Origin: Antechinus flavipes
Lineage: Eukaryota
Length of the DNA: 64,000 nt
Assembly: GCF_016432865.1 (NCBI RefSeq)
Contig: NC_067401.1
Location: 181,598,001 to 181,662,000 of the forward strand
Direction: 5' to 3'
The notes beneath the pieces were generated by a model. The model ran no database searches and had not been told where the DNA came from. It saw only the letters and a program-made list of their open reading frames with translations. Positions 9,001 to 9,411 of the stretch are shown in pieces. Made by a program: the position numbers and the translations under genes. The first letter of the stretch is position 1. Each line of letters begins with the position of its first letter.

Positions 9001-9411
9001 TTAAGCCCTCTCTCCTCGGATGCGGCGAGCTAGCTGGATGTCCTTGGGCATAATAGTCACACGTTTGGCGTGGATGGCGCATAGGTTGGTGTCCTCAAAA
9101 AGACCAACAAGGTAGGATTCACTGGCCTCCTGCAAGGCCATCACAGCCGAGCTCTGAAAGCGCAAATCAGTCTTGAAGTCCTGCGCGATCTCGCGCACCA
9201 GCCTCTGGAAGGGCAGCTTGCGAATCAGCAGCTCGGTTGACTTTTGGTAACGGCGGATCTCTCGCAGGGCCACGGTACCGGGACGATAACGGTGAGGCTT
9301 CTTCACACCGCCGGTAGCAGGGGCACTTTTACGGGCCGCTTTCGTAGCCAGCTGTTTGCGAGGTGCCTTCCCTCCCGTGGATTTACGGGCAGTTTGCTTA
9401 GTACGAGCCAT
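9001..9411 (-). CDS. H3: Histone H3, replication-dependent type (S96) with A98S
   Basis: Complete 136-aa ORF, A31/S87-A-V-M90 replication-coupled signature. Codon TCC at 9115-9117 gives Ser98. Confidence 0.97.

Follow-up and report, generated by a model that had tools for sequence, protein, structure and literature searches.

The intronless histone H3 gene at positions 9001-9411 (-) of the stretch of Antechinus flavipes DNA analyzed here (64,000 nucleotides of the yellow-footed antechinus assembly AdamAnt_v2; hereafter the window) is very probably the Antechinus copy of the marsupial TRIM11-linked, replication-dependent H3, an ordinary S-phase H3 gene in which serine at residue 98 (S98, in place of the alanine of H3.2) is near-neutral. 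The orthology of the marsupial locus to eutherian H3-4 is already published: in a search of 109 mammalian genomes for H3-4 orthologs, the marsupial gene in the arrangement '<TRIM11 <H3.2' was named a putative H3-4 ortholog (Komarov et al., Nat Commun 2026; PMC13396413). The window matches this arrangement, and the view of the initial annotation that the gene is a marsupial H3-4 ortholog stands in this putative sense. The species set of that study does not include A. flavipes, and the paper labels the marsupial protein H3.2 without discussing the history of S98. The present locus adds a fifth marsupial species, and the second dasyurid, to the published orthology.

The gene is intact, with 136 codons plus stop, and its product is a 136-aa H3 (Pfam Histone, E 3e-48); the RefSeq/GenBank gene calls for the locus include no H3 gene at 9001-9411. 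The comparator within the window is the canonical H3.2 gene at 47878-48288 (+), whose protein is letter-for-letter the H3.2 reference in Supplementary Data 1 of Komarov et al. (2026; PMC13396413). The two coding sequences have 63 nucleotide differences in 61 codons, 60 of which are synonymous. The remaining one is codon 99 (residue 98), which is TCC in the gene at 9001-9411 (9115-9117, read 9117-9115) and GCC in the paralog. Accordingly, 135 of the 136 residues are the same, including A24, A31, SAVM at 87-90, and S96, and identity with canonical H3.2 fails by A98S, as the initial annotation had reported together with the lack of A24V. For this pair of paralogs, dS is 1.19 and omega is 0.0055 (Nei-Gojobori), which indicates that the S98 gene is an old paralog under strong purifying selection. 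The same dS rules out a recent copy and, being saturated, implies that the S98 gene is not being homogenized with the H3.2 gene in the window. The S98 form is rare overall: its exact protein is found on 36 contigs, compared with at least 1000 for H3.2.

Outside the coding region, the signals are likewise those of canonical replication-dependent H3.2, and the intact promoter and stem-loop described in the initial annotation were both recovered. Upstream, the promoter and 5' UTR (9412-9545 (-)) contain two CCAAT boxes (9540-9536 and 9499-9495) and TATAAATA (9477-9470), all read directly. Downstream, a histone 3' UTR stem-loop with a purine-rich downstream element (about 8945-8935) occupies 8935-8979 (-). 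The match to the Rfam Histone3 family (RF00032) scores 35.9 bits against a gathering score of 34, and the hairpin is GGCTCTTTTAAGAGCC (8974-8959) with the loop TTTA. The H3.2 gene at 47878 also has, by eye, a textbook hairpin, GGCTCTTTTCAGAGCC, at about 48325-48345 (+) of the window; in contrast to the TTTA-loop hairpin of the S98 gene, it was not reported by Rfam at the gathering threshold. With an intronless coding sequence, a CCAAT/TATA promoter, a stem-loop and downstream element at the 3' end, and a location among other histone genes, the S98 gene has the architecture of a replication-dependent core histone gene. It differs from canonical H3.2 in S98 and in a syntenic identity that is fixed across marsupials. 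Between Antechinus and the Tasmanian devil (Sarcophilus harrisii), the region from -200 to -1 relative to the H3 ATG is 94.5% identical, a single base differs in the core promoter (CCAAT boxes through TATA box), and the hairpin and downstream purine element are 100% identical; the flanking DNA around H3 is about 88% identical. These patterns show that the gene and its signals are under constraint. Pseudogene status is ruled out by the low omega and by the conservation of the promoter and 3' signals in devil.

The H3 gene sits 3.4 kb upstream of a TRIM11-like exon on the same strand. This exon (5024-5509 (-), with the ATG at 5509 and the ORF extending to 5605) encodes a RING and a B-box (zf-C3HC4_4 and zf-B_box) and was identified as TRIM11 exon 1 also by protein matches, with 73-77% identity to proteins of the TRIM11 type. 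In a length-limited protein search from Met 5509, among whose matches there are no full-length marsupial proteins, the top matches are unnamed exon-sized ORFs (67-77% identity) and a bat TRIM11 (73%), and TRIM17-named proteins have 53-57% identity. A protein-cluster search returned generic TRIM clusters only. The exon is orthologous to the devil TRIM gene located downstream of the devil H3, and no TRIM17 was found between the window H3 and the TRIM11-like exon.

On its other side, the H3 gene is accompanied by a diverged H2A gene of the HIST3-type partnership (11788-12180 (-); N38S, V54A, H124Y, and A126I), with a stem-loop at 11700-11745, and by an H2B pseudogene (19746-20122 (+)), which was identified by tblastn in two frames and has lost its start codon and acquired a frameshift near 19895. 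The syntenic H3-4 position assigned in the initial annotation is therefore well founded, given the TRIM11-like exon, the H2A gene, and the H2B remnant. The gene content of this H3/H2A/H2B trio mirrors that of eutherian HIST3. Among the H2A substitutions, N38S is common to Antechinus and its devil ortholog, V54A is present only in Antechinus, and the C-terminal tails are HYKIKGK in Antechinus, LHKVKGK in devil, and HHKAKGK in canonical H2A. The exact Antechinus protein of this H2A occurs on one contig only (CM028220.1 of GCA_016432865.2), at a locus (L010) that is the exact reverse of window positions 1788-22180. In the H2B pseudogene, Ile replaces the start Met, whereas the devil ortholog (L011:3424-3804) is an intact though diverged ORF of 126 aa. 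With H2A diverging and H2B dead in Antechinus, the sub-cluster is not evolving like a bulk-supply histone cluster.

Eutherian H3.4 resides in a small isolated HIST3 cluster. In contrast, the trio in the window continues into a larger histone cluster, and within 45 kb there are an H4, an H1, an H2A/H2B pair, a gap-truncated H4, the H3.2 gene, and another H2A. The truncated H4 is cut by an N gap of 500 bases (43959-44458), after which residues 55-103 are readable (44461-44607 (+)). A second gap consists of 181 N (35583-35763). The trio is separated from the remaining histone cluster by ORFs at 22811-24488 (-) that resemble, by eye, LINE-1 fragments of the endonuclease and reverse-transcriptase type.

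The same layout of H2B, H2A, H3, and TRIM is present in devil at two loci (L011 and L012), which were found through a S. harrisii H2A with the NCBI name 'histone H2A type 3'. Because these loci are 99.995% identical, they represent two assemblies of one species, and L012 was rejected as an additional species. At both loci, the H3 protein is identical to that of the window, including S98 and its TCC codon. The Antechinus and devil H3 coding sequences have 13 synonymous and no nonsynonymous differences (dN 0, dS 0.139), and the alignment is collinear over 11 kb at about 88.5% identity. The coordinates of the L011 H3 are those of ENSSHAG00000003579 (chr1:349733042-349733584) in Komarov et al. (2026; PMC13396413), and the window gene is orthologous to this devil gene. 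A locus from Gracilinanus (L013) contains an H2A/H2B/H1/H4 sub-cluster, and its H3 gene model runs off the locus.

According to Supplementary Data 1 of Komarov et al. (2026; PMC13396413), the S98 protein is found beside TRIM11 in opossum, devil, koala, and wombat, with all TRIM11-linked marsupial copies reading EASESY (S96 and S98) and with residue 98 encoded by TCC in opossum and devil and by TCT in koala and wombat. The legend of their Supplementary Figure 2 highlights S98, and the main text does not discuss S98 in marsupials. The same study found lower substitution rates at the marsupial loci than at eutherian H3-4, and found no monotreme cluster. The window gene resembles these marsupial genes in lying just upstream of TRIM11 in the same orientation, in its protein including S98, and in its location in a large histone cluster with H1, H2A, H2B, and H4; it differs from them in that its partner H2B is a pseudogene. 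The question raised by the initial annotation, whether other marsupials have A98 at this position, is thus answered in favor of S98. The residue occurs in three marsupial orders, with devil checked directly and opossum, koala, and wombat taken from Supplementary Data 1. Fixation had taken place by the time living marsupials last shared an ancestor, and the residue has been retained since.

The position and architecture of the window gene are those of eutherian H3.4/H3t: it is the histone gene nearest to TRIM11(/TRIM17), has the same orientation and H2A and H2B neighbors (here without TRIM17 between), is of the replication-dependent type, and shares S98 with human and mouse. However, the features that define H3.4 lie elsewhere. 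V24 is what distinguishes the 60 H3.4 orthologs, and C96 is encoded by all eutherian H3f4 orthologs (Komarov et al., 2026; PMC13396413). These two residues are present in all or nearly all eutherian H3.4, whereas the window gene has Ala at residue 24 and Ser at residue 96. It also lacks the lineage-specific M71 and V111 of hominids and H42 of muroids. Although S98 is present, it is not a defining residue. The table of Komarov et al. contains the motif EACESY 35 times and EACEAY 27 times, with the H3.1 reference counted among the latter. Of the eutherian H3-4 orthologs listed there, about 60% have S98 and about 40% have A98. In our set of 51 representatives, 25 have S98 and 26 have A98; among the 46 eutherians, 20 have S98 and 26 have A98. 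A98S is therefore not a diagnostic H3.4 change, contrary to the initial annotation, and the related idea that the gene represents an early stage of the variant loses support, since the residue on which it relies contributes neither to the definition nor to the function of H3.4. Furthermore, because strepsirrhines, tarsier, and New World monkey pseudogenes carry A98, the S98 of human and that of mouse may not be identical by descent. A residue common to the human and mouse testis H3 and to a marsupial gene is thus a poor marker of variant identity, and the present case reveals no new kind of histone or mechanism.

Functional data and the distribution of the protein point in the same direction. 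In mouse, S98A left testis weight, sperm count, and histology unaffected, also when combined with a null allele; V24A and H42R, by contrast, had effects (Komarov et al., 2026; PMC13396413). In vitro, hNap1 assembled H3.1(A98S) like H3.1, and only A111V mattered. Outside mammals, too, the exact protein with H3.2 sequence and S98 is encoded in ordinary histone clusters (loci L006:382-10411, L002:10001-11268, and L007-L009); the exact-protein search of contigs returned only non-mammal places among the matches listed. In GCA_032854445.2, there are four tandem S98 copies. An S98 copy lies tail-to-tail with an A98 copy in GCA_009764595.1, and three S98 copies share one chromosome in GCA_036365525.1. 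These non-mammal assemblies presumably include two octopus genomes. Taken together, the lack of a phenotype for S98A in mouse, the normal assembly by hNap1, and the ordinary clusters with S98 outside mammals indicate that the A98S change is most likely near-neutral in function.

For the history of residue 98, the states in Supplementary Data 1 have a patchy distribution among eutherians. S98 is found in catarrhine primates (TCT), tree shrew, horseshoe bat, and armadillo, and among rodents in squirrels, hystricomorphs (including pseudogenes), and muroids, with the codon TCC except for TCG in Mus and Rattus. A98 is the state of galago, three lemurs, tarsier, two New World monkey pseudogenes, pika, rabbit, every listed carnivore, artiodactyl, and equid (except for T98 in musk deer), hedgehog, sloth, tenrec, and elephant, as well as of golden hamster and a jerboa pseudogene within rodents. 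The scoring set consisted of 46 eutherian H3-4 representatives and five marsupials, in which pseudogene codons were counted and near-identical species were collapsed; it excluded musk deer, gerbil, and species lacking data. Changes were mapped on a standard mammal tree with approximate node ages, and the analysis has no outgroup because no monotreme cluster was found by Komarov et al. (2026; PMC13396413).

Parsimony over the 51 taxa requires eight changes with A98 at the eutherian root and nine with S98. Under a free-rate two-state Markov (Mk) model (lnL -25.3; about 0.0035 per My each way), the probability of S98 is 0.95 for crown marsupials, about 0.4 at the therian root, and 0.01-0.02 at the eutherian root, the last value being low owing to the A98 lineages around the short basal branches. 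The neutral rate of a single specific transversion, as estimated from general mammalian rates, is 2-8e-4 per My. When the gain rate is held at 0.0002-0.0008 per My, the loss rate becomes 0.007 per My (lnL about -27.0), and the probability of S98 is 0.97-1.0 at both the therian and eutherian roots, at a loss of fit of about 1.7 lnL units. The ancestral-S98 and ancestral-A98 regimes are not separated by these data. The proposal in the initial annotation that A98S predates the therian split is thus favored when gains are capped at neutral rates and disfavored by parsimony and by the free-rate estimate for the eutherian root.

We assign about an even chance to convergence, the alternative named in the initial annotation, in which the TRIM11-linked H3 of the therian ancestor was plain H3.2 (A98) and the same G-to-T change became fixed independently in the marsupial stem lineage and, among eutherians, at least five times (counted here in rodents, tree shrew, catarrhines, a bat, and armadillo). 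Both parsimony and the best-fitting Mk model agree with this history, and A98 is found in every non-catarrhine primate lineage and around the short basal eutherian branches. Moreover, the same protein arose in distant animals, and no sampled marsupial has lost S98 in spite of many nearby A98 donors. However, the fitted gain rate of about 0.0035-0.0039 per My is approximately ten times the estimated neutral rate, such that repeated gains would need positive selection, yet S98A is neutral in mouse. In addition, the likelihood lead over the ancestral-S98 regime is less than two lnL units.

It is also quite possible, at somewhat below even probability, that S98 arose once in the TRIM11-linked H3 before the marsupial/eutherian split and was later erased repeatedly in eutherians, most plausibly by gene conversion from canonical A98 genes; it would then be the oldest change of the H3.4 lineage. 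S98 is present in all sampled marsupials and also across eutherian superorders (armadillo, horseshoe bat, tree shrew, all rodent suborders, and catarrhines), and the catarrhine TCT is one step from TCC but two from GCC. The neutrality of S98 in mouse argues against repeated gains driven by selection, and a neutral residue leaves six or more parallel gains without a reason. When gains are held to neutral values, S98 is reconstructed at both roots, as given above, at a cost of about 1.7 lnL units. Two clear rodent reversions from S98 to A98 may illustrate the erasure: across codons 97-99 of H3-4, golden hamster has GAA GCC TAT where Chinese hamster has GAG TCC TAC (Supplementary Data 1), and the jerboa pseudogene is H3.2-like at both sites (S96 and A98). 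Both look like short conversion tracts from canonical H3 genes. Nevertheless, a single origin is one step longer by parsimony (nine vs eight) and receives only the 0.01-0.02 of the free-rate model at the eutherian root. The loss rate of 0.007 per My also predicts about two losses in marsupials, whereas none is seen, and the reconstruction depends on approximate tree ages and has no outgroup. If S98 is indeed ancestral, the H3.4 lineage began to diverge from H3.2 before the appearance of V24 and C96, and the view in the 2026 paper that the ancestor was a plain H3.2 gene would need revision.

Under either history, residue 98 at the TRIM11-linked locus has changed at least eight times across mammals, and the rest of the protein hardly changes. 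The rate exceeds the neutral point-mutation prediction either way, which implies recurrent selection for Ser98 or recurrent conversion to Ala98. No report of this repeated flipping was found in the literature searched. An explanation of these flips would reveal how a histone gene in isolation avoids homogenization, or undergoes it, on the way to becoming a variant.

It is improbable that the marsupial gene is already a germline-specialized, testis-biased H3 variant with S98 as its functional signature. Such specialization would fit the retention of S98 across marsupials and the fast evolution or decay of the neighboring H2A and H2B genes, as in a specialized sub-cluster. However, the promoter and 3' end follow the ordinary replication-dependent pattern, V24 and H42, which are important in mouse, are absent, and on its own S98 is neutral in mouse and without effect in vitro. 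The marsupial loci also have substitution rates below those of eutherian H3-4 (Komarov et al., 2026; PMC13396413). Finally, a sequencing error or private mutation of the sequenced animal, for which only the single-base nature of the difference speaks, has a negligible probability and is refuted by the same codon in two devil assemblies, by S98 in four other marsupial genomes, and by four sequencing runs that contain the stretch.

Histone mRNA 3' ends are made at the stem-loop and downstream element by SLBP and the U7 snRNP. From its intronless coding sequence, CCAAT/TATA promoter, stem-loop, and downstream element, the window gene most likely operates as S-phase core histone genes generally do, with the 3' end of its mRNA expected to form by the same pathway. 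We infer that it is expressed in a replication-dependent manner, and the steps would be transcription in S phase, processing by SLBP and the U7 snRNP, and incorporation of the product by CAF-1, with S98 being neutral in marsupials. The encoded product is an H3.2 with Ser98, located midway along the alpha-2 helix of the histone fold, and without V24 or C96, and the H3 so supplied is most likely interchangeable in function with H3.2. Alternatively, the retention of S98 for at least 80 My in every sampled marsupial, amid A98 donors, could reflect selection for S98 rather than neutrality. The diverging H2A and dead H2B alongside it, and the missing H3 call at this position in RefSeq/GenBank, also count against an ordinary S-phase gene.

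Sequencing runs provide one more line of information on the locus. Four runs, all from one 2021 study of one organism, contain 88-100% of the words sampled from the mRNA stretch. Only 84-108 million letters are present in two of the four, far too few for genomic coverage, which suggests that they are RNA. Eighteen more runs from two other organisms, three of them metatranscriptomic RNA, contain 10-17% of the sampled words (window positions 8930-9470), and these probably correspond to the conserved coding part in relatives.
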